A DNA stretch of 63,795 nt, filler included, from Choristocarpus tenellus KU-1152 (Eukaryota; Protista; Phaeophyceae): NCBI GenBank assembly GCA_964200185.2. It is 4 parts of 4 records of this genome, joined end to end, with 100 filler letters (N's around TTAATTAATTAA, not from the genome) between each part and the next. Parts side by side here need not be neighbours in the genome. Positions count along the whole stretch, not along the records: positions 1 to 25,994 come from CAXNAD020000173.1; 3 more parts are not named here. One strand, given 5' to 3'. The position numbers and the translations under genes are program-made. Shown here in pieces: positions 2,443-25,833 of the stretch (its first letter is position 1; each line of letters opens with the position of its first letter). The notes below the pieces were generated by a model that made no database searches, had not been told where the DNA came from, and was given only the letters and a program-made list of their open reading frames with translations.

Positions 2443-2780
2443 GTAGCAACTAGTGTGTGTGTGTAATGGTTACGTGCTTATCTGCTGCCAGTAGTGTCCC
2501 ATGTTCCGTGTGTATCTATAACAACTAGTGAGTTTGTGGGTGTATGTGTTCGTGTATGAATGACGTGTGTGTGTATGTGTGCATCTCTGTAGCAACTAGT
2601 GCGAGTGTATATATAATGGTATGTGTGTGTGTCGCTAGGACCTAGCGTAAGTGTACATATATATATAATGGTAAGTGCGTGAGTGTTTGTTGCGACTAGT
2701 GTATCAGTTGCAATGGATGTGTGTGTCTGTGTGTGTCTGTGTGTGTTTGTGTGTGTGTGAACCATCACTAACACACACAC
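2443..2780. repeat. Imperfect GT-rich minisatellite/microsatellite
   Basis: Recurrent (GC)AACTAGTG...(TG)n...ATAATGGT units and (GT)n runs. Explains the H/T-rich spurious ORF 2478-2969. Confidence 0.75.
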
Positions 2781-4017
2781 AGTTTGTTGCGCCGACCAGC
2801 CTAGCCTACTTCCTGGTGTATCCACGTATAGGGCCACACATGTCTTGTTGACCGGTACATCTTGTCCCTCGCAGTCCAGGATAATTGGGTACAACTCAGG
2901 AACAATGATAGGGTTGGGATTGTATAATACACTGAAGCAAACTCCGTTCATTGACTTCATTAGCTTCATATTAACTTGACCTATCCCTCAAGTAGGCTCG
3001 TTTGTCATTGCGGAAGCAATTAAACGGCATGTTGAGTTGTTGCCTTCATTGATTCCTAGGAGGGAACGGAACAAATAAAGATAGGGGACTTGCGTTCACT
3101 GTTGCACTCCATATAATTCTTCTCGTGAGGATTTCCGGTCTATTTCGTTTAAGTTTAGTGGTTGAAATCGGATTCATTTCTTATCCTACCTTCCACTCAC
3201 AATCTCGTATTGGAAGAAGGGAGAACTCCGTTCCCATCTCCCTCTCAATTTTTTTGGTGATGTTTCTCGAAACTGGCACGATGATAGACAGAGATATACA
3301 ATTGTGAAATCGTCACTCCAACTCCCAAACCAACAGAAATTTGTTGGAATTTCTTTCATTTCTACAACTTTGTTTTCCGCAATCGATGTAGTTTCAAGTT
3401 TAAACTCTCCCTGTATCTTCCTTTGGCTTTTTGTGGTTCGAATAAGAAGGGTCTGGAATCTGTGACACTATTGTGAAGGAATAATAGGAAGCATACTGGG
3501 TTTGTTCATTGCTTTCCTCTCACTACCTTTAGATCCAGTCGATCTCATACTTACAATGTTACCACATATAGTAATAATCCAGTACCCTAAAATAGATAAT
3601 CTTGTCAACATGCTTAGATAATACTAGAAATAGGTAACGAACATAGAATTTTAAATATTTTGTAAACTTGGTCAAAAACATTATTATTAGAGTGAAAATC
3701 GCAACATAGTATAATGATCTCCCATACTTCGTAAACTGTAGAGCCTGTGTTGGAAAGAACAATTGTAAATGGTGTATCTCCTAATCGAAAAATAAAACTA
3801 GAAGTAGACGGATATGAGCGAGTACCTCTAAGTGTTCTCCACCAACTACCCACCCAACAAGAACCTTTCTCTTAGAAGCAGTAACAATATGGGATTGAAA
3901 AATGGTATTAAAAGAACATGTAAGAAAAAGCTATAGAGAAGAATACAAGGAAGTGCTTTAGAGGTGGGACAGTTAGTATTTGCTTGTGTAAGGAAACCTT
4001 AATTTCTTGCAAGCAAG

Positions 4018-7000
4018 ATGCCTCCCACTACCTGGGGTGCATGGTTGCCTCTCACTACCTGGGGTGCATGGTTGTTCCTTCTGCCCCTATGTATCAGGGG
4101 CCAATTTCGGGCCTATGATGGAACGGCAAACAATGAGCACTACGAATCTCAGGGATCAGTCATGACCGTGAGTGAGAACAGAAAATTAAATGTTGTCCTA
4201 CCAAATTTTTAGTGAAGAGACGCGACTGACGCTGTGGTACCTGGTATCTATCTGTCCACGCCTTCTGCAGCCCTTGATCCGCCTCCACGATGCATTTTAC
4301 GAAGATGGTGTCTCGAAGCCACCCCGCCAAGATGGTCCTAGTGCAAGAGAGGTGATGCACCACCTCTTCCTGGGTGAGTTGGTCATTTTCTGGTCCTCTG
4401 AATAGCGCGGGCATAGGTTATGTTATGCTTGAAAGTATGTAGATCGTTACATGTCCCATGTCCGCTCCAGATGCTAGCACCCAGGATGCAAATCTCCCTG
4501 AGAAAACACTGAACACACGTCTTCAGCGGTTAATGGTCCGAACTTGTAAACATGGTTATATGCAGTATGAGGAAGTGGTATATTGTTACTGGGAAGCTTG
4601 GTGACGTTATCCCTGTGAAGTGCTGGAAAGCTACAAATGCAGAACGCAAGATCAAAATATTCAACCTTGCTTCGCCGACCTCTCTCCACTTTCCAAAACT
4701 TGTACTTCAGGGCTTCCCCTCAACAAAACCCAAGGTACCTCTCAGTTCTTGCCAGCCTTTGGGCAACTAGTGGCGCATGACATCTTGGAGTTACGGGTAA
4801 ATGAGAGTGTAGAGGAAAGCTTTCCTATCCTGTGCTCTGATAATGTAGTCGACATGTGGTGTCCCCTGGCGAGCAATAGCAGCATCGACTTCCAGCGTGC
4901 AGAGTGGACGCTGGTGGGTGACATGGGGGGGGATGTTAATTGGTTCGTAAAAGAGATTCGTATACCTATGGGGCGAAATCTTCGATGACAAGGGGTATAG
5001 TTGCCATGCCACTGCATCTTTATCGCTTCTCCCGTTTCTGGACCCCCCGAAATTGCAAAATACGAGTTGTGGGAGTGGTGAAACCTGATGAACTCGTTGA
5101 AATGCTCTTCTCGATGTACGCACATCTCCAGGTGGATGGAGTTCGTTTTCCTTTAAATCATCAGACTGCGTACTTGGATGGCTCAACAATCTACGGCTTG
5201 GACGAAGAGACTGTGAAGTCCTTACGCTCTTCAGAGGGTGGAAAAATGAACCTCACTGAAGACGGGCTTCCGCATTACTCTTACAATACAGAAGATGGCA
5301 TAAAGATCCAGGTATGAGAAGATTCTCGTCGAAGCAATTTGTCACAACATCTAGAGATATTTGCCTATTGGTTGACAGAGAGTGGCAGAGGGAAGGAGCT
5401 TTTAAGAATCAATTTCTGTAGAAAACGACTTTCGGGGGACAGGTGTTAATTGTGAGAGATTGGCCACCAAGTTTGTTTCCACGTACATACGACCAAGATC
5501 AAGTTTATCATTGAATGGATATTGAGACGCCAGGGAATATGAGGTAGGTAATAACGAAGTTCAAACGTTGACCTTTGATTACTACAGGGCGTGAACCACA
5601 GAAGTCGGACCACAATGTACACGATATTCTATGTTACTGGGACATACCCTTTTACGAAGTCTCCTCTGTAGGGAGATATGATGAACGGTGACTTCATTTG
5701 TTGATAAAACGAAGCCCATCAAAGTGTGTCTTTACAGGTGACTATCTCCTTTCCCTACCATTTGTACAGACAGATGGAGGACACTGGATGCTTGGTGACG
5801 CCAGAAATGCTAACAATCTATCTCTCCTCTGGTGAGACTCCTAAGCATCCGGTACAGTATTCGGAAAAAAATACTATCTGCCTAATGGAACAATGGTTTC
5901 TCAGTATTTGATCGAAATCAGGGACTGGGAGGGAGCCTTCCAGCATAATCCGTGGCCCATCACCCCGCCAATGGCACAGCTATCTGCTCCAGTGGAATAG
6001 TGACTGGTGGTATCTCAATGTTTAACAGCTGACAGATCGTTGAAAAGAAATACACCTGGGATGAGGGGAGACATGAAAAATACGTGATGTTCCAAAGCGC
6101 AGATTTTCGTAACATTTTTTGTTGTGTTTTTATTGTCTCTCGTAGGCGTAGATATCATCACAACAACCGTTCTTAGGGCTCGGTAGCTGAGGAACCCTTT
6201 ATGCACTAGAGATCTAGAAAGGGTATGGAAGGCATATTTAAGAGCTATGGTACCATACCTCTCTAATTAAGGACTTGATGTTTCCATTTGTGCATGCAGG
6301 AAGTGAAGACGGTTTAAATTGCAAACAATTTGTAAGCTCTATTTCATAGATAAGATGCCACAACATTCTCCTCCTCCACAACCTTGTGTGTACGTTCCAT
6401 GTGCTCAACACCTGCCGAGCAGCCTTGTCATTACCTTCCTTCGTGAACACAACCGACGAGCAGAGGAGATAAAAGAAAAATACCCATCACTGGATGATGA
6501 GGTGAGATATCTAGGCCATACGCCATATCCATTTTCGTTTTTGAAAATATGTTCATCATACAATGTTCATGTCTGTGGTTGAGTAGTAATGTTTGTACTA
6601 ATACCCCAATCAGCCCCACTTCACTGTATTGCCAGGCGTATGCCCTTGTGGTGGAGTGAGGGTGGTTAGTATTACAACAACCTGTTGGATTCTACCTTAG
6701 GTACATAAAAGAGATCGTAGATTTTTCTTTTATCTATGCTATAAACCCCACGAACTGTCCAACCAGAAATGTATGGAGTTACGAAAAATGAATTTTGATG
6801 CATGTCATGCATGTGAGTATTTTGCATGTATTTCGCACATCTCTTATTCATTGGAGAAGGTTTACCCAGGTATGCAGGTGCCCAGGTTTGTAGGGCTGCC
6901 CTCACTTATAATTTGGCTTTTATTATTCTAACCCTACACTTAGTCTACATAGCGTTATGTTAAATCTGCTACAGAATTAATTTTAACCTTTCACATATTT

Positions 7001-9914
7001 CTGTGATTTCTCTTGCATCAATATATCTTTTGGTTAACGTCTGAACTTGCTTTATGATTCAGGAGCTTTTCCAGAGGGCACGGCAGTGGGTGGTGGCTTT
7101 GATTCAGACCATTTTCGAGGCCGAGTATGCCCCAAGAATTCTGGGGAAACCATTGGACGCGAGAGTTTATGATGAAGGCGTGGATTCAACCATCGATGTT
7201 TTCTTTGCTGCAGTGGTAAGAAGAGCCTTTGTGCAAATTGTAGTTCCCAATCAGCAGTTACCTTCTTTTATTTAGTCTGCTTTCATGGTTATTATACCCA
7301 TTCCTCTGGTGGATGGACAGTGGAGTCAAATCTATGTGCCTTGCTGGAAAATCCAAGTTTCTAAAGTTTGTCACGGCGTACTTTGCTCCCCCCCCCTGAC
7401 TGATGTGATGTATGAATTGAACTTTCCCCTACCTTGACCATGGTTGTGGGCAACAGGCTTTCAGGTACGGCCACAGTGCAGTTAGTAATGTCAACCGGCT
7501 CTTGGACAGGGAATTCTACCCCATTAGTGGTGACCCCATGCCTCTGCGACAGACCATGTACAACACACGGCCCACTGTGAGTATTTATGCCTTTTTAACA
7601 AACATGTTTGACAAGTGTGTGCAGGTGGTTGGGAAGCAATTCGCTCTCATTCAAGGGACAAGTTCCAAGAAAGTGAAGGGATTGGTTGAGCCATTTATGC
7701 ACAATTTATACAACTTTAAGTCAAATATAGGTGTAGGAAAATGCAGTATCCCAAAATCTGAGTTTCCACTAGGAGATATTTTGGGCATAAGGAAGCAATA
7801 GTTGGGGGAGGGGGTGTACTGGAGCTCTTGCCTGCCTAGCCTTTGTGCATGGCAGGATCTCAGCAGGTCGGAGTAAAGGCCTGATATTACAAAGATTTGG
7901 TGATATTACTGTGGAGTACAAATAACAAACTTGAGTACCGTCTTGATGGCATGTGACAATGCTAGCGCTCTAACCGCATGCATTTCGACCTTTGTCCCAA
8001 TATGGATAAGATCTTTAACGCTGGCATTGAGTCTATTCTTAGAGGACTCATGGTTGAGAACGAGCATTCAGTGGATGCGGCTTTTGTTGATGACCTGCTC
8101 TTGTTTGATGTCTCCATTCCGGTCTTCAATGTTCAAAGGGGAAGGTGAGCACAAATTTGTATGGAAACACCTCGCTAATACTGTTTCGCTTCTTTCATTT
8201 ATGTTGAGGAAATAGTGAAGCCCCCAACTCTACAGGAAAGAAGAGTGATAAACGCAGGGAGATACAGGGTGCCGTGTGGTTCGGGGGAAAGGATCCCAGG
8301 AGAAAAAAAGCTGGAATTATAGTTCCAATCATCGTCCACTTGCGTAACCATTGTGATACATGTATAATTGGCATTAGTAGGTCTACCAGCATTATTTACT
8401 TCATAATGGCTTGAGCATTAGGGGGTTAATGAACCAAAGTATCTTAGAGGGTAGGGCCGCGTCCATTTGAGGTCCAATATCCAATGTTGCGATTTGGATG
8501 TAATTTTGGCTATAGTGTTTGTTAGGAAGTATCAATATCCTTGTTCCAGACACACCTTTTCATAACGTATACATTTTACCTACTTCGACTCACTTTGGAG
8601 TAGGAAAATGTAAAACAAAAAAAACATGGGAAGCCAAGCTCCAAATGGACAGAGCAAAACTCGCACCCTCTAAGATACTTTTACTCTAATACTTCACCCA
8701 TTCACTGAAGGGAGCATAGTTACTTTGTCTTCTTACACGACACGTGTAATGGTTGTTTCGATGCTGCATCACTTGGTCACCCTGATCATCGAACAATAGA
8801 AATACACAAGCAGTGTGTTGTGCTGGAGAATTGGTCTTCTGGACATCTAGATGCTGATTTTGCAGTTACTGGTGATGGGGCTGATTTTTCTCCTGCAGAG
8901 TTGGGAGGTTCTCTATATCTCGTCGAGTTGCTTAGACTCGGAAGACAACTTCAAAGGGTCCTCACCTAGCTAGCATGATGCCCTCCTTGCTTGTCTCATT
9001 GCTATTTATGTTGTCCATTCCTATTCTCGATTCCAGGGACTTGGGAGTATGTTCTTTTAATGATTGCCGTGAGCCACTAGGGCTGCATCCCTTGGGCACG
9101 CTAGAGGACCTCACTGACGAGAAAGTGACACTGAGCATTCTGCGAAACTTATATGGGGAGTTGGAAGGTTTGGATCCATACGTAGGAGCCCTAACAGAGA
9201 GCATGGGAACAGGCTTGGTGCCACCACTCATGCTTGCTAGCATCAAGGAACAGTACCAGGTGGGGAGTTCACATCATGTTGCCGAGCTGAAGGGGCTTAG
9301 TGATAGCCTGAGAAAATAACTTGGAGCATGGAATTTGTGTTATCTTTTCCCCGCTCAAGGACAGTCTGCAATATGGTTGTGCTGCCCTCCAAATAGTCGG
9401 GAAAAGTGTAATTCATTATTCGCACACATATATATATATATACTTTTAACGCAAGAAGTGTAAGTTGGGCGCCGATTATGCACCCTTTCAAGCAAGCTAC
9501 GTCTCTGGGGTGTTGATACCAGTACCGACTTGATTGGAATCTTGTTCTCTGTAACACCACAATAACTAACTTGGGGTTCTTCTAGGCTGCGAAGTTTGGA
9601 GTGGAACAAGGTAAATGGGCACAAGATTAAATCTATACGTAGGCAATAGGATACAAGGTATGGGTTGTGTTAGCGAATCAGGTGAAACAAGATATTTTAT
9701 TGTTAGAGTGGATGAAATTTTGTTGGTACACAATTTCAATCCTCAACCTGAGCTTTTCCTTCTGATAGCGATTGCTGAATGGGGACCGACTCTGGCATAA
9801 TACTTCAAATGAATTTGAGGCCGTTGATGGTTGGTCGCTGGCTCGAGTAATCAAGGAGAATTGTGATGGAATGGACCTCTTTCCCGTCGATGCTTTTTCC
9901 ACGGCAACATGGAG
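4018..9914 (+). other. Domain: secreted-type animal heme peroxidase (An_peroxidase-like), exons 1-11
   Basis: FRAYDGTANN, PSAREV, FGQLVAHD (distal Gln/His), NHQTAYLDGSTIYG (Ca loop), GDAR (distal Arg), FLREHN, LFQRAR, EYAPRILG, AFRYGHS (proximal His), NVQRGRDLG, LDPYVGALTE, RLLNGDRLW, SLARVIKEN. Confidence 0.95.
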
Positions 9915-12900
9915 GTGAGGATTAGGTAAACATCTCCATTGGTGAGACAGCAAGGGTGTTGGCATAAGAATTAGAGAATGGTCCCACTTAGGACACTGGA
10001 CTATTTGGAATACACACAAGTACGAAGTTCTTGGGTTGCGACTTCTTCAACATCCTTTTTAATATAACATTTAATGAAAGAGAATTTAGAAGCCAGTGCA
10101 GACCCATAATTCATTGGTGGTGATTATTTGTAGTGTGAACGCTATAGACAATGTCAGATGTGCTAACGTAGCTTGAACTTATGCTGGAAGATCTGAGCTA
10201 TCCAAAGCAAGGAACACCCTGTCTCCGACCATTCGTTAAATTCTACTGCTCCTCTAAAGGAACTAACAAGAAAATGGGGCGATAGGACTTTCACCAGTGT
10301 CAATCGGAAAATTTACATTCGATTCCGAACTACAATCAATTCGACTGATACCTGATTTCCTTGCCCCTTTGGAAATTTTTGTTCCCCTTCAGGAATTTTT
10401 AGTCAAAGTATCTTAGAGGGTAGGGCCGCGTCCGTTTGGGGGACAAAATCCAGTATTACGAATTTGATGTAATTTTGGCTATCGTGTTTGTTAGGAAATG
10501 TCAGCATTCTCTAACCCTAACACCTTTCCATAAACTACACATTTTACCTACTCCGAAATTGTTTTGGAGTAGTTAAAATGTCTTAAAAATCCCTTGGAAA
10601 GCCAAGCTCCAAACGGACAAACAGGGAAAAACTCGTACCCTCTAGGATACTGTCACTCTTTATTCTAAGATAAGGAAACTTGTTCGTGTTTATATTTTAT
10701 AAGAATATGATATTTTGTCCTCACAATGGACAATTCAATTTATCTCTGCTAGAACTAACGCAGGTATTCCTTCACGCTGGTAAACAGTATGTCGTAGGAT
10801 CGCCACATTTGACATGGGTATAAGACCATTGGATTAGCATGGCTGGAGGAAACTTTACAGTACCTCTACGCAAACATGACCCTGTGCAGTTACAGAGTTT
10901 CATTGCTATGTGTATACTCCTGATCTTGTTTACACACTTTGTCACCTGAAACGTCTGCATCCATTGTGCATTTGTTCTGTGTTTTGAACTACGTGCAGTG
11001 TGTGCAGTGGCTCATGCTCTTCCACTGGAGAGAGTACGTTTGATTTGGACAGCTCCTATGACCTCAAATGGGATCTGGACGATTTCAGAGTGAACTTCAC
11101 AATTACGGTAGGTGATCATTTCGTTGGGGATACACCTGTTACCTCGCTCCTCTACATATTGTCTGAACTTTCATTGATTGTCATTCGAAGCTACTGTTGC
11201 AACAAATTACTATCACAATGCATAAGTAGAAGGAATCCTTCATTGGCTGCACAGCATACCCGTGTCTTGGGGTGTAGGCCACTAATTGCACAGCTTATTT
11301 TCCACCACCCGGTGCATATTCAACTACTGTTACGAACTTTGTTCTGGGCAGATATGTCAACTACGCTATCCCCCTCCTGTCATTTTGTTTCTCTATCGTC
11401 GCACTTGTTGTCATCACCTTGTATCTCTCCTGTGGCAGGTGGGTGAAGAAATTTCAACAGGATTTATTGGGCTTGGGTTTGGTTCCGTGGACATGGAAGG
11501 AGCTGACATAGTCTTTTGCGAGTTTGATGGTACAGGTACTGGCCCGGACTGCTACGATGGCATAAGCGTTGCCAACAGACAGCCCGATAGGGACATTGAT
11601 GTGAGTGTGTGGTGGAATATCTTGAATGTTGAAACACCAAAGCCGTTTCATTTTTATGTTGGATTGTATTTTGTAGCGATAATTGGGCGAGCTGATTTGT
11701 TCCAAAGAGCCAACGTAATTGAGAGGTAGACAGGTTTGGACCCTTTTTGTATTCTAGTCCATATTTCTTACACTGTGCAATACGTCCTATGAAGTTGCTA
11801 TTTCCTGTAATAGTGCACGCAAAGTTGATGTTTGATATTCCCCCATACCAGACACAAGGCGATACCATAATTAACCGAAGGCTCTTTCTGTAATTGCACA
11901 AAATAGCGCCTTTTGCCATTTCTCCTTGAAATGCAACCTTGCTTACCTCTCGAGTAGTTTGGCTAATACTACGCTTCGAGCTATCAGTGTAATAGGGTGC
12001 TGCTGCTGTATGCTTTGTTGGAAGTTTAGGAAATCCCTAGGCTACCTGAACGTAGTCAGGGTAATCAGGGACTACAATTCTCAGTGGGACAGGTACTACA
12101 ATGCGAAGTGTTGCGGTGTACCCAGGCGATGTGTTAGCCTTTTTCGACAAAATTGCATATAGGAAGGCGATCGAACCCTCCGTAGTAAATATTATCGTAT
12201 CTTTAGTGCACACCTGAGGCACCGATAAGGTTTTTTGGTATTATTTTGGGTCATGATCACCAATCTATGTTAATAGAACCATTTTCTGGCGCCTCGAAGA
12301 TGACGTAATGAATTTTATTTCAACCTGGAAAAAATATACTCCAGGAATACATGTTTTGACATGGAGAACATTCAGGCTGGGATGCACGATGGTGATATCT
12401 GTCTCTTGTGTGTGAATGTTTGCGTTATTCAGTGATCAGGACGCCATTGCTATCCTGCTATGTTAAAAGATTGCGTGAAATGGGCCTCGTTGCCCATCTT
12501 GTACTCCACATAAAGTATGGATTCGGCTCAACATTGAATTACAATACTATGGGGTTGTACTCCACATAAATGATGTACACTCTTGCAACCACTCATCAAC
12601 ATGCTAAGTCAGATAGCACCACTACCTCTATATGACTTATCATAATGAGTACAGTGTATGATGATATCCATGTTTTTCCGCCCGACTACACGAAATCGTA
12701 CATGAAACTGTCGCTTGGTGTCGTATGCTTGTACCAGCACTCGCAAGGGCACGGTTTACTGCCACACGCTATCCCAGGCTTGTAGATGATGATCTCCTCC
12801 AGCTATCTTGATACACCATGCACAGTGACAATTTCTCGATCTCTTGATCTCCTACGTCCTACGCTTGTGGGTTGATGAACAATCAAAGGTGGGAGGAACG

Positions 12901-15900
12901 GACGAGCTAACTAATGTAGCTTTCTCCGTGGCGAATGGTTTTACCACTGTCAGTTGGGTACGGCCACTGCTGGCAACAGAGGTCCACGACAACGCTGTTG
13001 AGACATCTGGCACTACAGACGTGAGCTAGAGAGCAGAACACCACAAGCAAGATTACTCCACGTGCTTCCCATTCTGGAGTCTCATCAAACACACTCCCTT
13101 GATATTAGGATATACAGGGGACGGCATTGTTTCTGTTCCTACTCTAGCAATTCTATATATATGTCTCGTAGAATTTTATCCCCATGGTGCAGTGGCTGTT
13201 GTCAAAAACATGGTGACCTGGAGTCAATTTTTTTTATAGTCCACCTGCAACCTTGCGAACCTTAACTGTTGAATCTTCAGTGCAATGTTAGGGTGGTGGG
13301 GGTACCCAGGATGGCTTTGTCTCTGTGGGCAAGAAGTCACCAAGAAATTTATGACACTCACTATATCCTAAACCAAGCCGGAATAGCTTAACAGCTCCAA
13401 GGATGTGTACTGTTGAATCTCCAAATGATTGGCATCCTGAGCTCAAATTTATACCCCAAATCACTCAGACATCTCCTTCTCAACTACCCTCTCATCCCTT
13501 GCGTAATACCTGTGTTGCAGGTGGTCGTGGCATACAATCCCCACAGTGTTTCTTTTCATGGCATGAATCGCATTGGTAGGGCAAAAATTGATTTTTCCAC
13601 AGGGGTATCTACTACGAACTCCTTGGACTCCGACTCCTCCTTCTTCGCCTTCCATGGTGCAGGTCTGGTACTCCAACCTCTTCCCCTTCTCCCTTGCCTG
13701 TCTTGACAGGAAAAATACCTGTTTCCGTCTTTTCTAACGCAAGGGCCATATACCTGCTGTAAAATATTTTTAATTCTGGAAGGCACTACTAATCACCATG
13801 GGCTCAGATTATTGTTGTTGCTGCACTTTGAGAATCCAAGATAGGGAAACATTTAGGATGTTACAGTTTATAGCTAAATCTGATTTTTCCCGCCTTTCAA
13901 GTTTGTTAGGAGATTGAACCAGCATTAGTCTGTCGAGGTTGTCCATGGACACCCAGTGAATCCCATCGTGGCAACCAAATCTTCAAAACGTGAATAGGGC
14001 GTGTGTCGAAGTGCAAATGTATATGCAAAGCCTACGCATGTGACTGAGCGATTCCAAGCATGCTGCCTGGATATTGGATCCACTGTTGGGGGTTTCCCAA
14101 AATTGTATTGAAATATAGTGAACTGATACATTTTGTAGGAGAATAACGAAAGTTCCAACTAACCAACTCACCCTTTCTTCATCCACCACATCTTCGACAC
14201 AGTGATGCTTCTAGCATGGTGTGTGATTGGGCCAATTGGTATTTTCGCAGCACGTTACATGAAGGTCTTGTCACTGTGGCTGGAGGTTCATCACGGCAGG
14301 TATGCAATGTGATCTCTGTTGGCAGGGTGATCACTGGGCTGGTAATAGAGACCTGTGCTTCTATATCTCATTGGTCCAATGTTGGACAATAAAGTGAAAG
14401 ACGCCAGGCAATGCAAGACAACACAGCTGTCAATTTCTTCCCTGCTGAATAAACCCACTCTTTTGACTGAGACTGTAAGTTTGAAACCCAGTCAGTGAGA
14501 GCAAAGATAATCATGCTAAATCAAGTAGTTGAAGTTGCCCCATCCACTGCATCTGGTTTGTGCTCCATGTGATCGTCTAGACCTAAGAAAGCAGCCTGGA
14601 ACCATATTTATTATTTGACATGCCAGTTTTTTTGTTGAGTTGGCAATAGTGTGAATCTTGGTGGAGGGCACTACTCTACAGTATTAGCCATGTAATGGTT
14701 AGGTGCACTATGAAATTCTGGAGCATGCAGCTACTCATTTTTTGTTTGACTACTGTGCATATCTTAACGCGGAAAACCCACAAATGTTTACTACTAACCC
14801 AACACTACTTGTTCCCATCTATCCATCTACTGTTGAAAGCATGGCGTTTGTTGCTGAAACGGTGATTCCTCTTGCAGCATCTGCCCTGGCAACCACTAAG
14901 GTCGGAGATGGAAGTGAGGGAATTAGAGGGTATAGGGGGATTGCTGACTTTTTCAATTCGCACCCTAAGAGTTTGTGTGTATCGATGAGAAAGTTAACAG
15001 AGAAATATTTAGTAACAGATACTATGGCTGGTACCCTCTCTTCCACAGCAATGAACAAAACTATTGTCATATTTTGATGATGATGCCGATGATGCTCTGA
15101 GGAGTGCCTTGTGAACAACGTTTTGCGAGGGGACTTGTGTGATGCTCGTCACGTAATAAAAACCTTGTCACCATATTTTGATGACAATAGTGACGACACT
15201 ATGAGAAGAGCCTTGGTCACCGAGTAAGAATGTATGAATGGTGCTTTGAGAAAAGCCTTGTTCCTCGAGAAGGGGTAATGAGTTACGCTCTGGGGAGAGC
15301 CTTGTTCTTTATCCGAGAACAAATTATATTGCGAGAAGCTTTCTACGTCCTTGAGAAGGACCTAGTATGATACGGTGAATGCGATTCGTTAAAAAATACG
15401 TGAGAACATATAAGGGTGACTGAAGATGAACTGAGGGAGCAACTTGCGTGTCTCAAAAACACCAGGGAAAACGAGGTTGACACAAGAGGAACAAAGAGGA
15501 CAGAGTCGGGCTTTGTTGAAACCAAGTCTGCGTTTTGTCCAATCATACCTCACTATCTGCCTGACGTATTGTGCTGGTCAGTGGGTTGAAATTGTTGGAC
15601 AGTTGTTTGTTATGTTCTATAGACTACCATACAGTGGGATGGCCTTTGTTTCAACGTTCTTTTGCTGAGCATGTTTGTCCCTTCTCTTTCTCCCGTTAAT
15701 ATATCACATTGCAACTACAACTTGACAGGAGTTCTCGCCACTGAAATACATGATAACAACCACCTGAACCTCGCAGCCAAACTCATGATTCGCTCCCACC
15801 CCCACTCAGGGACAATTTCATTCATCCCATTCCATCATGGGTACCCTCGTTATGGTCCTTGTTGCCTTTCAAGTGGCCTCAGGCTTCAAGCGCATCAGTT

Positions 15901-18900
15901 CACTTAAGAGCAGTCAATATGATATAAAAGTCAAGGTTTGTGCAGGTGTTGGTATGGCCGAGGGAACTCATGAACACTGCTTGCTTTTAGGGGTGAATAG
16001 GATTACTCCTGCTTCTACGTACATTATTGCGCCCTAGTGTTCTGAGACAAGATGCATACTGAGGATTTTCATTTTCAAGAACTATGGCTTAATGGGCTAG
16101 GTATCCCTGGGCATGTTATGTCGAGTGTATGTGAACAAAAAAGAGATATGTTGACTCTTCTTTGCACGACACATTTTTTTTGTATGGCTTCCACATAATG
16201 ATTCCTTCTGCTTTTTCCTACGCTATTTTCTTCTTTTACTTCAGATGATGGCAGTAGTGCACATGTGGGGAGGGCGCGCCCTAGCTGTGTTGGCCATTTT
16301 CACTTGCTACCATGGTTTGTGTCTCATTGCTCCAGATACTACACTTACGATTGCATCTGAGGGTGTCACAGGCGACGATGCTTTTGGACTCGAGATCAGG
16401 GGCTTTGGATCAATGCTGAAGTAGGTATCCAGAGTTGGAACATACTTGACATTCGTCTGGAAATAGTATTTAGATTGTTCAGGCTGTCTACTTGTGTTGT
16501 CGTAGAGGTGTCTGAGCAGTCTGTTCTTTGAGGGTGTGAGCTTGTAGAATCAAGAGCTTTAAGTCATGATAGACATGCCCTGTAGTCAAGTTAGTGTTTG
16601 TGTGCATATGCCATGTTTAGGTCTGCTGACGCTCTTCCCTCTCCTCATCTTGTAAAGGTACTACTGGACATATATCGGTTTCCTGGGAGTGGTATTTGCC
16701 ATTGGTGAGGTGCGACTACGATTTCAGAACAGATATGATCAGATGGACTTCGTGAAGTGCTTGGATTTACCCATCTTAGACTTGAAGGTGATTATAATAT
16801 TTCTGGCAATGGTGCTTTGTTGCCCTCTACTGCAGAACAATGGTAAATAAAAATATCTACAAGCGTTGGATGAACATCCCCTACCCTTGCTCCATCCATT
16901 TAACATGCTTCTGTGGAGTTTGTAGTATCTAACTTAATGGCAGAATTCTATACCAGAATAGAATGTGATATTCAAGAGCATTTTCTATAGTGCTTTGTTC
17001 ATCCAGCAGAAGACTGATCTCGTCTGTCATCCCAAGTACTGCATAGCCTGTATTATTCTCGCAAAGGAAGCTAGCCCTAAAAAACATTTCCACACATGTC
17101 GAGGTAAATGTGCTGCGATCTGATGCGTAGCTGTGCTTTTATTTTTGGAGCCCTTTCAAAACATACTAAGTAACTACTAGTGTGTCAGAAAACTCGTTGT
17201 GCTCACATCACTCGCTTCAAACAGGAGTTTCGTGCACATGTGGACAATGGCTCCAAGTGGGTACTGGTAGATGACGCAATTGTGGATCTAGACATCAACA
17301 ACTTGCGTGAGTACAATTCGCGTGAAATGGTGGGAATTTGTTGATCACAAGAGACCTTGGAGAGTCGTCTAGAAGCTGAGCTTTGACCTTTCATCATGGC
17401 TGTTCGGGAATAGTTGCAAGACAGTTTTTCGTTCAAGCTCAAAATGGTTATCAAACCTGTTTCTAAAGTTGAGTTAGTCAAATAGTTTATGTGAAGAAGA
17501 TATCAACATTGTTGTCCTTCTGGTGCCGCCTTAGTTGAGAATCATCCTGGAGGAGCCCGAGTCCTGCGAGGGTCAATTGGGACAGATATCAAGAAAGAGT
17601 TGGCTGGGGACGAGGCTGCTGACACTGGCCATTCCCATCGCCACTCAGCACAGGTGAATATCTATGTTTGAAAACTCGCGGAGCTTCAGGTGGACGTCAT
17701 TGCATGTGGTATTAGAGTAGAGATAAATTGTAGTGCGGGTGTGTCCTCATGCCCTGAATTTGGGAGGAAGAGGTATTGACTTGAGGTTCTTACACAGTTG
17801 TGATTGATTACAGAGTTCTGAGTGAAGTATCTTAGAGGGTATGAGTTTTTCCCTGTTTGTCCATTTGGTGCTTGGCTTCCCACGTTTTTTTAAATGGCAT
17901 TTTACCTACTCTGAAATGTTTTGGAGTAGGTAAAACGTGTACGTTATGAAAAGGTGTGTCTGCAACAAGGATCTTGGCACTTCCTAACAAACACGATAGC
18001 CAAAATCACATCCAAATCGCGATATTGAGTCTTGGTTCCCAAACGGACACAGCTCTATCCTCTAAGATACTTTCACTCTTCTGTGAAATTGCTTTCCCTT
18101 ACTATCTCTTGATACCTGACCCTGCTGCGTAGGCAATGAGTGCTGTGGCCAAGATGGTTGTGGGCTACATAGGTGGTTCACGTAACAGATCAGGGTTAAG
18201 TAAGAGGGCTGGTGATGCAGGAGAAAAAACACCTGTTGCCTACCAGAAGTACACCCTTAGCTCTGCTACCCAGGTAAGTCATCTATTCTATTCTCCCTTG
18301 GACCTCAACTAGCAAGTGTTGATGCTCCTTGAAAATGAAAGTAATGGTTTTTGAGCTTGGAGTATGCATATTGAAGTTGAACGGCTGACTATTGTGTGGG
18401 GAATTGTCCAGTTGATCGTGAGGAGTGTTATGATTTCATACCTATACATGACGCATATGCTCTCGCTGTGTTGTTTTTTCATTTTTCTGTGCCTATTAGA
18501 GTTTGGGTTGGGAGACATTGATGTATACTGCACTTGCTATACTCGTCACCTCAGGTGTGTAAAGGTGATGACCGACCTGTTTTTCTGTACACATTCATGG
18601 CATACAAAGATGAGAAACAGCAGCCAAGGGAAATCAAGGCAGGTGAATACATGCGATTCCAAGCCTCTCTTCCTGATGGAACGGTTGTGCAACGGTAAGC
18701 CAGAGTCTGCACCAGATTTTGATTGACTTGCAACTGCAGAAGCCAAGAGGGGTGGGGTGGGTGGATCATTAGTGAGGGGGATCATTGTATGTTCCCAATG
18801 TGGAGTTTCCCCCGAAAACACTAGAAGCCTAAATATTATCTCTGATGTAGACACCTGACTTTAATTATATAGACTTGTTCTTCCTGTCCTTGGCAGAAGA

Positions 18901-21900
18901 TCTTGAATCTCTTCGAAGCACACACTTATCTTCTACCTTTTCCATTTCTTACGCAGATCTTATCACATGGTTGAAATGATTCAATATGGAGAGAGGAGGG
19001 GCTACCGCTTTGTCATCCGTCTCTATCCGTTCGGTCTCATGTCTGGTGTCCTCAGGGACCTCAAACATGGGTCGAAGATGCGAATGATTGTGGGTATAGT
19101 TAGTGATTGCATATATCTGTGCCTCATTTCAGCCCATGGATGTTTTTCACCAGTTTTGGAGATGTGAACCTTGTATTGCAATGTATGAGCTTCTACCTAA
19201 GTACTAGAATGAGGTTCTATAGTTTGTGCCACCGCTCTATTTTATGTTGTGGTTTCGCTTGGCTGGTGGAAGTCCCTAGCCGACCAAGCTTCTGCTTTTG
19301 GCACCTCATTTGACCAATAAATATTGCCGGTAAATTATTGAAATATCTGCAGGGGCCCTTCAACTTGGCACAGGTACGACTCCCTCCTTTTGATGACTAC
19401 GTTTACATGTTTGCTGGAGGCACTGGGGTATCTCCAATGCTGCAGATAATATACCAATACCTGGGAAGTCCGAGGAAAGGGACAGATTTGCAGCCCCTAC
19501 CACGTAGTGAACACGGGGAAGGAATGCAACCCGCTCCTGTGAAGGCTGCTAGGCAATCAGCTGGCGATCATGATCTTACGGACAAGGAAATACCTCTGGT
19601 GCCACATTACTACAGAGATGAACCTTCCTCATGGCCCCCCAACGGAACAGGGAATGGAAAGCTGTGAGTTGAATTAGATGAGCTATGTTGTATTTTGTGC
19701 TGGTTTGTCGCACTGGATCGATGACACGCTGCTTAATCAGCTACAATACTTGGTAATAGCATCAAGGAATGGATTCTTTGCCTACAGAAGCACATCCAGC
19801 CACTACTTCCTTGTGGTAAGTGCATGGCATACAATGACCTATGAAGCTAATTCTAAGGTGATGACTGTCACTTCCCCTGCATTACTGTATCAGGCTCCTG
19901 GTATGGCAGGCGAAATCTGAGTCAGAGCTCTACCTCAGGGACTGGTTAGAAAGCTGGCGGGATCACAGTGGTGGTCGGTTTTCATTTATCTGTATTGTAC
20001 AGGTTTGATACGATTTTTTCCAGTTATGCCTTTTTGCAGACTGGGAAATATATAATTCTTATGATGGTGTAGGTGGGCATTAGACATCAATGGGTCCTGA
20101 ATGTGGGGGGATGAAATATTATCATGTAGGAACTGCTGTCATGGCAACTCTTGCAACATTGACTTCAATGTTGCGTTCTTTGAAGGTTATGTTCCAGTAA
20201 TACCGTTTTGCACGACAATGTCAACACCAGCAAGCAGCACGCAGATTTGTTTCTCAAACCTGTGCACGTCCCTTCCTGAGCCCTAGTGTTGAATCTAGGT
20301 GCTGCTACCTACTGTGGCTCTGTAATAAAGCTTTCAAAATCTACCTAGAAAACAGTTGGAAGTTTTAGTCCTAAACCCCACTAGGCTGCGCACACTTAGT
20401 AGTGTTTTTATATCATGTCCTCCAGTAATATGGGGTCATGGAATTTGAGCGATGGTTACTTCTCATACATTTGCATTTTTAGCGTTGTAAATGTAGAGCT
20501 TCTATTAATAGCGATTGAAGTTAAATTGATCTCGTAGAGATATATATCCTTCGTAGCATTATGCAATAGAGATGTCATATTTTGCTTTTTGTAGCAAGCA
20601 GGTAAAAATATGTAGTAAATTATGGCAATTGTAGAGCTATGATGGTTGAAGTTGTTTTGATCATCTGGAAGTACCATTTGTCGCAATCGCCAAATTGAGA
20701 TCCATTTTCACATTCTGACGTTTCCCCCTTTTTTCACTTTAACCTATTTTTTAATATTTTGCAATTCGTTTATATTTCTATGGATGAAATAGCAAGTTTG
20801 AAAAAAGCTTTGGAAATTTCTTACACACACATTGTACATAACCCGAATGTTTACACATACTTGTCATCCTTAAAATGCCACTCTGGGTACCTCTCGTTTA
20901 CTTTGGTTCTAACCAGATGGCAGCGTACTGTCCTGGGTGAGGAGACTGAAAAAACTGTAGTTCATTCCATGTTGTACAGCAGGGTCGCAATGGAGCTACT
21001 CAGTTTCAACCCTCTAACCCTATTCTGATCTTTCAAATACATTGCACGCTCATCCTCATTGATTCTGCAGCAATCGAAGAAAGAGGATAACTTCCGTGGA
21101 CGGCGTTCAATTCCTCGTTCGAGTGGGTTACCTCGTGGTAGTTCTCGTTCGCTCCCAATAGGTCCTTTACGCCAATCGAAAAAGTGGAGGAAAGTTACAC
21201 GCCCAGAGGACCAGGCGATGCAAAGTGCTGTTGGTGATGTACCACTTGTCGACAATCAGGTAAATAGAAGCAAGAGTTTATCACAAGCGATTTGGCTGCG
21301 TGTGTTGTAGGTCCCTAGAACCTCTTTTCAATAGCTGACCGTATCATAAGTGGCTTGCTGTCTGCCAATTTTCCCTCCTGAAATGCACCTTAGCTTTAGA
21401 CCAACTACTAGAGAGGGGTGATGACATCATTATTGGTACCAGGTTACTTTCTCGTTTTACTGCTTGTCACAGTCGCTAAGCAAACCCTAGGCACGTTTCC
21501 GACCTAATTTTTTCTTGATCACATTTTTGTAACTATTTGCCCTGAATTGGTTTTCCTCGCAAGTTAGAGGACCTCCTGCGGGCAACCTATTATTGTATCT
21601 CTCAGTATTATCTGGAAGACTAGGGCTAACCTGTTTGTGTGCTTTTGTATACTTAATTTTGTGTTCTGTCCGGAACCGCTTTCTAAATTTGTTCGGAAGA
21701 ACAAGAGTCCCCTCAAAATGCTGTAGGTCCGGATGGGTATTGATCTATTGCGCAAATTTTTCAGTATGGAAAGGAAGTAAGCCAGGTGTAGGTTTGACTT
21801 CAAAACATCATATCGGTAACAATCAGTGGCCAACAAACCTGCCCAAGCATAATATACCCAATACTTGTTTTATCTTTGTGCTGTTAAGAGTAATATGTAG

Positions 21901-24900
21901 TATACATTTTTTTGCTATTTGTCAAAACGAGTGCTTGGCCGAACACAGATGGGTGCCTAACTGTGCTTGATTGACCCGTCTGTTTCGAGTGGTATTGCTC
22001 AGTTCAACTCCGCCATCAAGTCAAATATTTGGCTGGGACGAGCAAAACATACACTACCAAGCAAGATTTTTCTGGGTTGTCAATACAATCAAGGAAAATC
22101 CTAGTTTCTGTTGCTGCAACATAAGTAATTGAACAATAACCCAACATCAAGAAGGAAGGGATACCAATTTTTACCCTATTTTGATCCCTCTTTTGATGTT
22201 TCCATGATAACTATTGAAATAATAGTAATTATTGTCAATATTCACACGAGTCTACAGGGTCATTGACCTGTGGTTGAAAGAAGGGCTTTCACCAGACAGG
22301 GTAAATTTGACAGGATCGGACCGAGGGTCGTTCTGGGTGAAACATGTTTTAATCGACTTGGTCGAGGGCTATCAGAGAGTACAACCAGACCACACTGCGT
22401 AATGAACTGTGTGCAATATTTCTTAACGAGGTCGGATTAGTGCCATAAGACTTTAAACTGGACCAGGCCATGGGTCAGCCTTGGCGATACATGTCTTAAC
22501 TGGGTTGGGATGTGGATCTGGTAAGGCCTATTGGTCTGGTGCAAAGCCTTCCCTATAGCAAGGGACTTCAGCGGTTCTCACTAGATATGAATGTTCATCA
22601 GAAAACCTGCCATTCAAAGTATAATTCGTTGCTCTTCAACTGCACTCTACCTTCTATTTAGGATGATAATGAAGAGAATCCAAGTGTATTGGACTAACAC
22701 CCAGATACTTAGTGTATTATTGACACGTTGCCAGGTCGTATGGGAAAGAAGGGGATAACGGAATTAAGAGGCGAATGAGTCGATGTAACCTGAACCTGAC
22801 TTATCACATGTTATGCAAGGGGAAAGGAAAGAGTAGAGGGATGTAACAATAATCAACCCAAAAAGAGAACGACAATGAGAAAGCAGGTTCAGTAGACATT
22901 GGGGAGTGTGCATGTGCTCTCATCTGCTTGGGTTGCCATAGTTGCTGCATTGGCATAACGTACATCAGTTCATGAAACTTGCTGTGCCATCAATTACACT
23001 ATCTTGTCATCTGTATTTGATTGGTTGCTCTTGTGCTCAATTCCTCCACACTGATCCCAAAGTTGTCAAGGACGTCTTTCAGGCACATCCACCGGTTCTT
23101 CTTCTGTGTCCAACTTGTTTACGTTTTCATCTGCAAGCTTCCCAAATATTAACGGCTTGTGGAGTTGCTCATCCCCCATACATGCAAATCACCTGCAGAT
23201 AGGAGTCTCCATCTTCACACAGTCAGCTCGATACTCTACACCCAGTCTTTGTAGGACAAGGCGTGATTGGTGGATTTCCGTTGTATATAGAATGCAGCAT
23301 GGACGAATTTGTCGCAATGAGACCGAAGCTTGACATAGTTGACCGGTGGAGCGTCCATGTTACACAATGATATATTACAACCACAAGTGCTTCAGCTTTC
23401 GAGCACTTGGATCTTAAGCTCACCTAATACGCTTGTTGTCCTGTTATGAAACACTTAACTGTACTTTCAGAAACAACCCTGGGCGTTTTGAACCTCCTTA
23501 CAAAGATCTCAGTGCTGATCTCTCATCTTCATCACTGCTGGTGCCTCAACGGTAGACAATCTTGTCAGTCTTCTTGTACCTCTGATCCAATGGACAGATG
23601 TTGATATCTGCAGCCTTATTTTGAGGTTCAAGGCACACGGTCACTGTCTTCCACTCCGACACTGTCAGCCCAAATGACCTGGCATCCTTCACAATCACTG
23701 CCATCTTGGCCAAACTTCCTTGGATCTCTGACACAATGCTCACATTGTCAGCATGAAGCATACTCCACAATACTCATGTCAAATTACTTGCTGTTGTATG
23801 TATTTTGGGAGGTAGAATGTGCGATTTTTACGGTATGAAGATTGTGTAGCTTCTTTGATGTAGGTTCATCTGTCAAGTACTCCTTACCATATGTGACAGA
23901 TGATGTCAAAGATATCAGGGAAGATAAAATGGAGGATGAAAATGAGCACAAAAAATCAGGGTTAAGTTCACGAACCATCAAAGGATAGAATGTTGTGGCA
24001 CGCCAGAAGAGAGAGACTGGAGAGGTTCACCATAACCTCCCTTCAAATATGCACGTGTAGTTCAGCTACTGGTGGTGGGGTGGTAATGTCTGGGAGATAG
24101 CCAAGGATGGCAAAAGAGTGACTACCTCAAAGATTTCTGGCTCAATTCCCTCTTGACAACTGACGCTGTTGTTAGTAGTACATTATACAATCACCCTGCC
24201 CATCAAGACCGTCATGTTATAAATATCGTATTTGTGAGAAAGGTGGTCAAAGCCTTCGAGTATGAAGCATCAGTAATTGTTGATGCCTCTTTTCCAAAGA
24301 GATCAGCATGTATTTATCTGGCATCTCACATTACATTCCCCCATTTAAGATCAAATGTTAATCTGTCATTTAAAACCTTGAACCTAACATGTTTGCTCAT
24401 CTTTGAGTCGGCATTCCATACTTCTGCATTAGGGTTTTGAAGAAGCCCGACAGTATTGCGTTCCAGTACCAATTATTCCGGAGTAGTTGATATGAAGTAT
24501 CTAGGTAGTGCTTGTTTTTATGGTACACATTCCTACGCTGACAGCACAATTTGTCGGATATATTTAATTTTAAGTGAAAATGTTGGATGAACCCCACTCT
24601 CATATTGACCGTGTTGCATCTGTCCGTGTCAATCCCCTGGCAGGATGTGACAATGAAGGTGACAGAACATGTTTCAACGGCACATGCAGCCTTGATACCT
24701 TGGGGAGGAGATGTTGAAGTTGCAGAACCTACTGGGGATGTACAGGTGAGCTACTAGGAGGCATCACACAGCAGTCTTTTCGATATTGCAGATCGCACAC
24801 ATAGTTCGGTGATATATTTGGGTGCATACCATCCAAGATGTCCAGAGGAGGAGGACTAAAAGGGTCTTGAGTTTTTGGTGCCGTGGTTGTCATTATACTG

Positions 24901-25833
24901 GCGGTGCTCTCGCTCTTTACATTCGAGTGTAACATATTCAGTAGAACGTCAAAAGCATCACAGGAGAAATAAAACTAGGAACTCTCCAAAGCTTTGAAAA
25001 TACCTACTTCACGAGTGCGCTAGATTTTTCTCCTTGCACCCATGGATTGAATGCCTTAGGTATGACTGATGTGCTCAATGATACGTGTGAGATCAACAAC
25101 TATGTTGCTTTACAATATCATGGGGAGCTTTCACGTCACTCACTCTACCCTGTCAGGAAGTCACACTGTGAACCCATTGCAAGAACGTGTGACCATCCTG
25201 CAACTAAAAGGAACATCTAAGCCGTGAGTGCGGCTTCACACCCTTTAAATTAGCTGCAACCTAATGACATCATCAACCTTTTTGTCCTTTGTCAGCCCTT
25301 CTCTCTTTGAAAATGAACAAGCTGCCATACCCGGTCCATCATCGTGTCTGCCTCACTCTTTCCTCCATCGCTCCCTCGTCAATATTTTGATTCGATTGGA
25401 AAAATGCCCATGCTCATTTAGTTGGGCCGGATTGATGAGACTAATATCCAAAAATGGCTTTCCCTGCTCCTGGAAGCACAATCAAAGAACAAAAACAAAT
25501 CTCTCCGAGCCCCACAACACAATTCAAGTGGCTCCTCTCAGCACGACTTGAAGAACATAGGGTTAGATGATCAAGTGAGGGGTGCCCATTACCGTGCAGT
25601 CAAATCAGATCACTCTGTGTTTGTTCACGAGGAGGTGGAGGAGGTGAAGCTTGTCTCTGCTGCACCACAGGTAGTCAAGGAGAAAGAACCCTTGCATTGG
25701 GTAGGTATCACAAATGGCGATAGTTGTGCACAGCAGGATGAGAAGGCTGTTGAGGATACTGGGGATGCAGAGGAGGTCTTAGTGCCTCATCTGGACAATC
25801 TCAAGCACAAGGTCTTCATATGTGGACGTGCAG
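4018..25833 (+). CDS. Multidomain membrane oxidoreductase: signal peptide + heme peroxidase + DOMON + cytochrome b561 + cytochrome b5 + FAD/NAD(P)H reductase (3' end lost at the contig break)
   Basis: Phase-consistent GT-AG exons: 4018-4167, 4271-4373, 4711-4913, 5132-5311, 5770-5831, 6423-6501, 7063-7215, 7457-7576, 8011-8144, 9037-9259, 9769-9914, 11008-11107, 11439-11600, 12889-13020, 13521-13662, 14203-14299, 14840-14900, 15810-15935, 16245-16420, 16658-16787, 17225-17306, 17535-17653, 18133-18273, 18555-18694, 18957-19089, 19353-19663 (3605 nt, no stops). Less certain exons follow at 21071-21259 and 24644-24745, then 25422-25833 (LGRIDE...VFICGR). Diagnostic motifs are present for every domain. 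Confidence 0.88.
8436..8687 (+). mobile_element. MITE copy 1 (intronic)
   Basis: Termini AAAGTATCTTAGAGGGT ... ACCCTCTAAGATACTTT. Internal sequence is shared with the other three copies. Confidence 0.85.
10401..10659 (+). mobile_element. MITE copy 2 (intronic)
   Basis: AGTCAAAGTATCTTAGAGGGTA ... TACCCTCTAGGATACTGTCACTCT, same internal sequence as copy 1. Confidence 0.85.
11008..13620 (+). other. Domain: DOMON (heme-binding type), exons 12-15
   Basis: YDLKW...GFIGLGFGSVDMEGADIVFC (Met ligand motif), VSWVRPL...D, VVVAY...SFHG (His ligand). Confidence 0.9.
13640..16787 (+). other. Domain: cytochrome b561 (DOMON-associated/ferric-reductase type), 5 predicted TM helices
   Basis: FAFHGAVMLLAWCVIGPIGIFAARY; WLEVHH; HSIMGTLVMVLVAFQVASG; VHMWGGRALAVLA; fifth helix YYWTYIGFLGVVFAIGE. 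All four heme-ligating His positions are present. Confidence 0.9.
17225..18175 (+). other. Domain: cytochrome b5 heme-binding
   Basis: WVLVDDAIVDL...ENHPGGARVLRGSIGTD...HRHSAQAMSAVAKMVVGYI: HPGG motif, second His in the HSxxA motif, terminal VG. Confidence 0.92.
17820..18079 (-). mobile_element. MITE copy 3 (intronic, opposite orientation)
   Basis: GAGTGAAGTATCTTAGAGGGTA ... ATCCTCTAAGATACTTTCACTCT. Internal sequence is the reverse complement of copies 1 and 2. Confidence 0.85.
18230..25833 (+). other. Domain: FNR-family/cytochrome b5 reductase-like FAD- and NAD(P)H-binding module
   Basis: AGEYM, VQRSY (RxY FAD motif, split across a phase-2 intron), IRLYPFGLMS, GPF, MFAGGTGVSPMLQI, GRID, VFICG. 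Confidence 0.85.
22950..23780 (-). mobile_element. Degenerate non-LTR (LINE, RTE-like) reverse transcriptase 3' fragment, antisense within an intron
   Basis: Minus-strand translations: WSMLHADNVSIVS (decayed YADD), FGLTVSEWKT, QRYKKTDKIVY, KAEALVVVIYHCVTW. These match the RT C-terminal succession of RTE-type LINEs, with multiple stops and frameshifts. Confidence 0.8.

Follow-up and report, generated by a model that had tools for sequence, protein, structure and literature searches.

A Choristocarpus tenellus gene predicted to join an extracellular heme peroxidase to an NAD(P)H-fed transmembrane electron wire in one chain

The window analyzed here is a 63,795-nucleotide stretch of DNA joined from four parts of the genome of the early-branching brown alga Choristocarpus tenellus KU-1152 (GCA_964200185.2). 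Between 4018 and 25833, on the plus strand, it carries a gene whose protein begins with a signal peptide and continues through a heme peroxidase domain, a DOMON domain, a cytochrome b561 core with a fifth helix, a cytochrome b5, and a b5-reductase-type module for flavin adenine dinucleotide (FAD) and NAD(P)H. The arrangement points tentatively to a type I membrane flavocytochrome with its own electron source, and a guarded preference, at somewhat below an even chance, is given to its acting as a surface reductase, fed by NAD(P)H, that assists its tethered peroxidase in consuming H2O2. More speculative is the broader proposal that the gene represents a eukaryotic family of ancient origin whose members would be NAD(P)H peroxidases spanning the membrane in a single chain, with five hemes and FAD. 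Cytosolic reductant would turn over an active extracellular peroxidase in them, functionally opposite to DUOX on the same layout, and skipping of exon 21 might exchange NAD(P)H for ascorbate as the donor. Heme and FAD binding, the direction of flow, the choice between NADH and NADPH, plasma-membrane location, and the terminal acceptor are all matters that we infer.

Splice-site scoring and translation of the window define 30 exons, with every intron bounded by GT and AG, which join into an in-frame, stop-free chain of 1475 amino acids (aa) when exon 12 opens at the acceptor at 10999. An initial annotation of this stretch had described 26 exons with canonical splice sites, no stop, and one open reading frame (ORF) of more than 1200 aa; its splice sites, frame, and length stand, whereas the count rises to 30 in the window with a 31st off the contig. 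Exon 30 closes in phase 1 inside the C-G-x-x-G motif, and exon 31, with the rest of that motif and the stop codon, lies beyond the contig end and is found in the paralogues. Two such paralogues exist in the genome, one colinear over all 30 exons on contig C171 and a third copy split over contigs C19413, C18610, C2832, and C16714. Exon order is kept and splice positions are common to the paralogues and mostly also to Discosporangium mesarthrocarpum, which supplied the best match of exon 10, a 1484-aa protein, among the 1.84 billion representatives searched. The public model of the gene (CAM9139722.1, Choristocarpus tenellus, 1341 aa) is identical at 100% over exons 1-29. The modules, with the evidence that places each of them, are as follows.

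4018-4167, plus strand: exon 1, with the ATG, a signal-peptide-like hydrophobic stretch, and the start of the peroxidase domain (same start as CAM9139722.1)
4271-9914, plus strand: heme peroxidase domain, exons 2-6 (4271-4373, 4711-4913, 5132-5311, 5770-5831, 6423-6501) and 7-11 (7063-7215, 7457-7576, 8011-8144, 9037-9259, 9769-9914), from Pfam, a PDB sequence match of the orthologue, and motif alignments
10999-13640, plus strand: DOMON, exons 12-15 (10999-11107, 11439-11600, 12889-13020, and the 5' part of 13521-13662), from Pfam and the orthologue model
13641-16420, plus strand: cytochrome b561 four-helix core, the 3' end of exon 15 and exons 16-19 (14203-14299, 14840-14900, 15810-15935, 16245-16420), from Pfam, ligands, folds, and spliced introns
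16658-16787, plus strand: exon 20, the fifth transmembrane helix and the first b5-fold residues, from the orthologue model, hydropathy, and the spliced intron 16420/16658
17225-17306, plus strand: exon 21 (82 nt), which every copy conserves and which encodes the N-terminal b5 strands
17535-18273, plus strand: cytochrome b5 core, exons 22-23 (17535-17653, 18133-18273), exon 23 also beginning the FAD domain, from Pfam, ligands, folds, and spliced introns
18555-19089, plus strand: FAD-binding domain, exons 24-25 (18555-18694, 18957-19089), from Pfam and motifs
19353-25833, plus strand: NAD(P)H-binding domain, exons 26-30 (19353-19663, 19894-20002, 21071-21259, 24644-24745, 25422-25833), from Pfam, fold matches, and a contig of matching length

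Exons average 50% GC and introns 42%. A null test of the stop-free chain (log10 P about -32) is biased by exon selection and was not used as support. The public model terminates within intron 29 and thus goes without exon 30, an ending rejected here because exon 30 is conserved in all copies. The acceptor at 11008, which the initial annotation had joined to 9914, gave way to 10999 on the strength of the paralogue and CAM9139722.1. A candidate exon at 5588-5687 was dropped for incompatible phases and is present in neither the paralogue nor the public model; contig C16714 was considered for the final exon that lies off the contig, but is part of the third paralogue. A 27-nt tandem duplication at 4019-4074 in exon 1 lengthens the signal peptide, and the donor of intron 23 (18273) reads GT in this copy and GC in both paralogues and in Discosporangium.

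The window was searched against Pfam exon by exon, with homologues from other species used for whole-protein searches and folds. Matches to An_peroxidase (exons 2, 4, 6, 7, and 10; best E 6e-10), DOMON (exon 13, E 3e-4), Cytochrom_B561 (exon 18, E 1.5e-3), Cyt-b5 (exon 22, E 0.014), FAD_binding_6 (exon 25, E 0.0055), and NAD_binding (exon 26, E 0.014) follow one another in the order that the initial annotation had proposed, and the Discosporangium orthologue clears the Pfam cut-off for all six families, which bears out both that order and the presence of each spliced domain. In the peroxidase region the orthologue is closest among PDB entries to 8S6C (E 2e-66), with DdPoxA (6ERC) second (E 5e-55) and DUOX1 at E 9e-26. 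Its DOMON-b561 part folds at pLDDT 81 into a beta-sandwich followed by five long helices; the DOMON model matches the DBH DOMON and the CDH cytochrome with Z 13-14, and the b561 model matches 4o6y (Z 12.7) and Dcytb (Z 12.5) over NOX5 (10.9), a modest margin. The fifth helix, residues 325-355 of the orthologue model, brings the chain back to the cytosol in that model; its hydropathy is clear in the orthologue and weaker in the Choristocarpus copy. The C-terminal part of the orthologue matches cytochrome b5 and NADH-cytochrome b5 reductase, the reductase being closest to CYB5R and nitrate reductase (E 3.5e-41), although the NAD(P)H-binding domain carries long, poorly conserved inserts. Because a signal peptide is combined with five helices, the predicted topology leaves the peroxidase and DOMON on the outer face of the membrane and the b5 and reductase on the cytosolic face.

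Residues expected to bind the cofactors are largely in place. The peroxidase keeps both catalytic triads that were defined for DdPoxA (PMC5787809), the distal Gln-His-Arg as Q103 (4764), H107 (4776), and R224 (5803) and the proximal His-Asn-Arg as H316 (7472), N390 (8128), and R393. The heme-linking Asp and Glu positions are occupied by Ala106 and Asn227, leaving both ester-link residues of the LPO/MPO type absent. The putative DOMON ligands are M573 (11493) and H665 (13557), those of b561 are H697 (13653), H729 (14289), H759 (15828), and H800 (16260), and those of b5 are H927 of HPGG (17543) and H960 (17642), both invariant in the family alignment A4, so that candidate ligands for all five hemes are present. 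The DOMON Met/His pair, the four b561 His, and the two b5 His are conserved in brown algae, chytrids, Rigifila, and Cafeteria. In the reductase module the FAD motif R-x-Y-T-P reads R-S-Y-H-M in the Choristocarpus copy, R-S-Y-T-M and R-S-Y-Q-M in the paralogues, and R-S-Y-T-P in Discosporangium, with G-x-M-S intact, and the NAD(P)H domain shows GGTG at 19416 and C-G at 25821. Selection of NADH over NADPH by CYB5R3 depends on the acidic Asp of its V-D-R-A stretch, a position at which the family profile shows no Asp. Conserved ligands, matching folds, and five-helix topology together give good support to the single-chain path, proposed from the window at the outset, that would lead electrons of NAD(P)H by way of FAD, b5, and both b561 hemes to the DOMON heme.

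The same fused architecture recurs in Phlyctochytrium, Quaeritorhiza, Lobulomyces, Clydaea, Sorochytrium, Rigifila, Cafeteria, and Tribonema; some of these relatives miss one or two Pfam matches but keep the aligned ligands, and the range is a lower bound, as word-based homologue searches were swamped or thin. The Rigifila fusion is a Trinity transcript ORF marked complete, and an intronless ORF on a Logan contig carries the fusion as well. Databases hold the family under automatic names only (ESM Atlas "Heme peroxidase family protein"; UniRef A0A5A8C9K7, A0A836CAL4), with the Choristocarpus gene a member of the same architecture. An ESM Atlas cluster of 179 members lists An_peroxidase in 100%, Cyt-b5 in 97%, and DOMON in 88%, and both the Discosporangium orthologue and the Rigifila protein score 0.98 to it. 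Variants include Cladochytrium, without DOMON; Edaphochlamys, without b5 and reductase; and an Atlas cluster commonest in ciliates (995 aa, 54 members), which lists DOMON, Cyt-b5, and FAD_binding_6 and no peroxidase family, and has the same DOMON-b561 fold (TM 0.75). In the amoebozoans Rhizamoeba and Pyxidicula, peroxidase and DOMON stand before a class C (7tm_3) seven-transmembrane receptor (P0006, P0024, P0083), with the DOMON Met/His retained in P0006 and P0024, making these proteins possible H2O2- or redox-sensing receptors. Wire heme ligands are nearly invariant across the family. Brown algae, Sorochytrium, and Cafeteria retain an intact peroxidase site; that of Rigifila is altered in part, and those of Tribonema, Lobulomyces, and Clydaea have decayed. 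In a peroxidase tree made by a quick method, with CAM9139722.1 (P0046) among its rows, a branch with a value of 94 in the Shimodaira-Hasegawa-like approximate likelihood ratio test (SH-aLRT) has every fused or peroxidase-DOMON protein on the same side, mixed with unannotated rows, a pattern compatible with a single origin and with several.

Full-text literature searches found this architecture described nowhere, though a passing mention may exist in subscription papers, including the 2007 DOMON survey. The main text of the brown algal genome preprint mentions neither peroxidase nor DOMON, and the relevant passages of reviews of the ferric-reductase superfamily (PMC3591440) and of heme peroxidases (PMC4420034) include no such fusion. 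The earlier statement that no characterized enzyme of this architecture was known is in keeping with these searches, but the architecture is not unique to this genome: the fusion of peroxidase and wire is an old, widespread, and apparently uncharacterized family.

In the mechanism proposed for it, the cytosolic cytochrome-b5-reductase-type module would take hydride from NAD(P)H onto FAD, which would hand single electrons to the fused b5 heme, and from there electrons would cross the membrane, first through the inner b561 heme and then through the outer one, to reach the DOMON heme with its Met/His ligands, a downhill path as predicted from the order of the cofactors. Favorable sinks beyond this point are Compounds I and II, Fe(III) or Cu(II) chelates, quinones, and peroxidase products. 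Where the peroxidase site is intact, as in the brown-algal copies, the most favorable would be Compound I/II of the tethered peroxidase after its reaction with H2O2, reached from DOMON either directly or via a recycled small donor such as phenol or iodide. The net effect would be to spend cytosolic NAD(P)H on removing H2O2 outside the cell or on reducing peroxidase products back again at its surface, and this net reaction of wire plus peroxidase is possibly new. That peroxidase and DOMON recur as a unit, with the DOMON ligands kept even ahead of b561 alone or of a seven-transmembrane receptor, suggests that the two work together. For DdPoxA the ferric/ferrous couple is -0.276 V, and it falls further as ester links become fewer (PMC5787809). 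Because this couple is negative in related peroxidases, only the oxidized intermediates would be easy sinks, and reduction of the resting peroxidase heme by the wire is unlikely. Unlike those of NOX, the b561 and DOMON hemes have positive potentials, roughly +20 to +180 mV; they are probably too oxidizing to make superoxide, with O2 a poor acceptor. The wire would therefore be poorly suited to reduce O2, and generation of H2O2 is for this reason the least favored of its roles.

Complicating this proposal are several observations that weigh against it. We know of no peroxidase of the superfamily that accepts electrons from a protein donor, and these enzymes take small substrates through a narrow channel. 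The wire ligands outlast decay of the peroxidase site in Tribonema, Lobulomyces, and Clydaea, and the cluster commonest in ciliates lists no peroxidase family, so the wire has a use without a peroxidase. In the Choristocarpus copy itself the Thr of the FAD motif is replaced by His, and the sole spliced form seen at the b561/b5 joint skips exon 21.

Alternatively, the protein might be a self-sufficient ferric or cupric (or quinone) reductase, that is, a CYBDOM/FRRS1 protein in which a built-in NAD(P)H reductase replaces ascorbate, with the peroxidase as an independent passenger limiting Fenton chemistry or as a scaffold; this is considered possible, if doubtful. Like CYBDOM, FRRS1 (SDR2), and the Arabidopsis proteins HYP1 and CRR, the Choristocarpus protein has a DOMON with Met/His on a four-His b561 core and a three-heme outward path (TM 0.55-0.67), and the clusters of FRRS1 and plant CYBDOM proteins rank second only to the ciliate cluster in similarity of predicted fold. 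CYBDOM wires pass electrons from ascorbate to outside acceptors, and both chelated Fe(III) and Cu(II) are substrates for reduction by HYP1 (PMC10784544). Those proteins draw on cytosolic ascorbate, however, and are without reductase, b5, or peroxidase, such that only the product of exon-21 skipping would fit among them. Fusion of b5 to a b5-reductase module as electron input is instead familiar from nitrate reductase and CYB5R4 (Ncb5or), which are soluble and deliver electrons to molybdopterin or to desaturases rather than across a membrane. Judged from its sequence, then, the core resembles a CYBDOM to which a nitrate-reductase-like input module and an active-looking peroxidase have been added. 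The DOMON-bearing FRE reductases of oomycetes and Naegleria (PMC3591440) offer another extracellular DOMON before an NAD(P)H-fed transmembrane wire, built there on a NOX-type ferric-reductase domain and with no b5 or peroxidase. Conservation of the wire where the peroxidase is decayed or absent also speaks for a reductase. What such a role leaves unexplained is the intact peroxidase site, which is under purifying selection, with a rough ratio of nonsynonymous to synonymous substitution rates (dN/dS) of 0.11-0.34 among paralogues, and its fusion to the wire in distant lineages; moreover, the genome already has six FAD_binding_8 loci of the NOX/FRE type.

A DUOX-like generator of reactive oxygen species, in which the wire would reduce O2 directly or by iron or quinone cycling and the peroxidase would spend the H2O2 on wall cross-linking, iodide oxidation, or defense, is judged unlikely. 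The initial annotation had called the protein a DUOX analogue, and in layout it is one: as in DUOX1/2 and BLI-3, a signal peptide, an extracellular An_peroxidase, a di-heme membrane domain, and a cytosolic FAD/NAD(P)H module share one chain, and the peroxidase domains are homologous. Superoxide generation has been linked to the DOMON cytochrome AIR12 (PMC10784552), and DdPoxA, the second-best PDB match, oxidizes iodide and thiocyanate (PMC5787809). The parts of the Choristocarpus protein are different, however. Its membrane domain is Cytochrom_B561 in place of the NOX ferric-reductase domain, FAD_binding_6 stands in place of FAD_binding_8, no EF-hand was matched by Pfam in any window exon or in the Discosporangium orthologue, and DOMON and b5 hemes and a CYB5R-type reductase are added. 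On the potentials given above, far higher than those of NOX hemes, O2 reduction would be uphill. The DUOX peroxidase domain lacks the proximal His and is inactive (PMC4420034), whereas the present one keeps that residue along with the rest of both triads. Those triads match DdPoxA, which with 8S6C is the closest solved domain, but DdPoxA is secreted and stands alone, its heme held by a single Glu ester bond, and the membrane-tethered Choristocarpus protein has neither linking residue; halide-oxidizing power tracks such links (PMC5787809). NOX/FRE-type genes are, again, already available in this genome.

Transcript evidence comes from the assembled (Logan) contigs of run X3, a run not on record as RNA. 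Nine junctions, those of introns 15-19 and 22-25, were seen exactly spliced in them, with zero base differences from the window in exons 24-25, and a spliced contig of 1186 nt equals to the base the length from the tail of exon 22 to exon 29, its exon 27-29 part resting on arithmetic rather than alignment. The region from exon 15 to exon 29 is expressed. Of the junctions named initially, 13662/14203 and 18273/18555 are both present, whereas 16787/17225 is absent from the spliced contig, which joins 16787 to 17535 and so skips exon 21. The skip shifts the frame to a stop at 18137 and leaves a 937-aa peroxidase-DOMON-b561 product without b5 or reductase, the architecture of the whole gene in Edaphochlamys.

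It is from this form that a further explanation arises, an improbable one, in which the Choristocarpus copy is mostly a truncated, ascorbate-fed peroxidase-DOMON-b561, or is down-regulated by nonsense-mediated decay, or is decaying after triplication while its paralogues supply the full wire. Besides the skip and its natural counterpart in Edaphochlamys, no spliced contig covers exon 21, the FAD-motif Thr has become His, and comparison with C171 gives dN/dS values of up to about 0.6 for the b561 and NAD modules. Selection argues otherwise, however. Although rough, dN/dS is below 1 wherever measurable, at 0.11-0.61 among the paralogues and 0.07-0.24 against Discosporangium where dS is unsaturated, and the b5 and reductase exons are intact and transcribed, with 0.15-0.31 for the b5 and FAD modules. 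Exon 21 keeps its frame, its splice sites, and 81% identity to both paralogues, and is included in CAM9139722.1, while the frame shifted by the skip is closed by stops in C171 and Discosporangium. This conservation, with the closure of the shifted frame, is why inclusion is read as the selected form and skipping as an alternative one, possibly bound for nonsense-mediated decay; Logan contigs drop variants, so that the inclusion form is not shown to be absent.

That two adjacent genes, a secreted peroxidase and a DOMON-b561-b5-reductase, have been joined only by prediction is scarcely credible: the peroxidase/DOMON boundary alone falls at an intron (11), outside the region compared with those contigs and with an immediate stop on read-through, but exon 12 lacks both a start codon and a signal peptide, both paralogues retain intron 11 in phase 2, the Rigifila transcript and the intronless Logan ORF carry the fusion, and the three other module boundaries lie inside single exons (15, at DOMON/b561, 20, and 23).

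In stramenopiles, zoosporic fungi, and CRuMs, the gene points to a family of plasma-membrane-type redox enzymes that is conserved, apparently unstudied, and of an assembly independent of NOX and DUOX. An intact peroxidase wired to NAD(P)H would offer a direct test of what a tethered peroxidase can do, a question not yet settled for DUOX itself (PMC4420034). The proteins would likewise test whether a fused b5/b5-reductase can drive b561 in place of ascorbate, and in algae and chytrids they are candidates for surface H2O2 control or reductive iron uptake.

Elsewhere in the genome, the six FAD_binding_8 matches (C166, C9469, C5948, C3222, C22905, and C15256) correspond to NOX/FRE-type genes. On contig C14748 (L015), positions 1000-3090 hold a divergent peroxidase gene without the distal Gln and His, resembling the decayed Tribonema domain and perhaps representing a second subfamily with a DUOX-like dead peroxidase. 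Within the window, positions 86-520, with an RNase H-like frame, a purine tract, and a short repeat, look by eye like the 3' terminus of a Ty1/copia-type element, and 23200-23770 on the minus strand, in intron 28, look by eye like a broken reverse transcriptase remnant of the long interspersed nuclear element type; neither has a Pfam match at E 0.01. One further feature lies within the gene.

8437-8685, strand not assigned: element of intron 9, outside the protein-coding sequence, that has terminal inverted repeats and resembles a miniature inverted-repeat transposable element (MITE)

Further MITE-like copies of about 250 bp lie at about 10406-10657 (intron 11) and at 17825-18078 (intron 22), the third copy at very high summed depth; the element is very abundant in the genome and occurs also in introns of the C171 paralogue.

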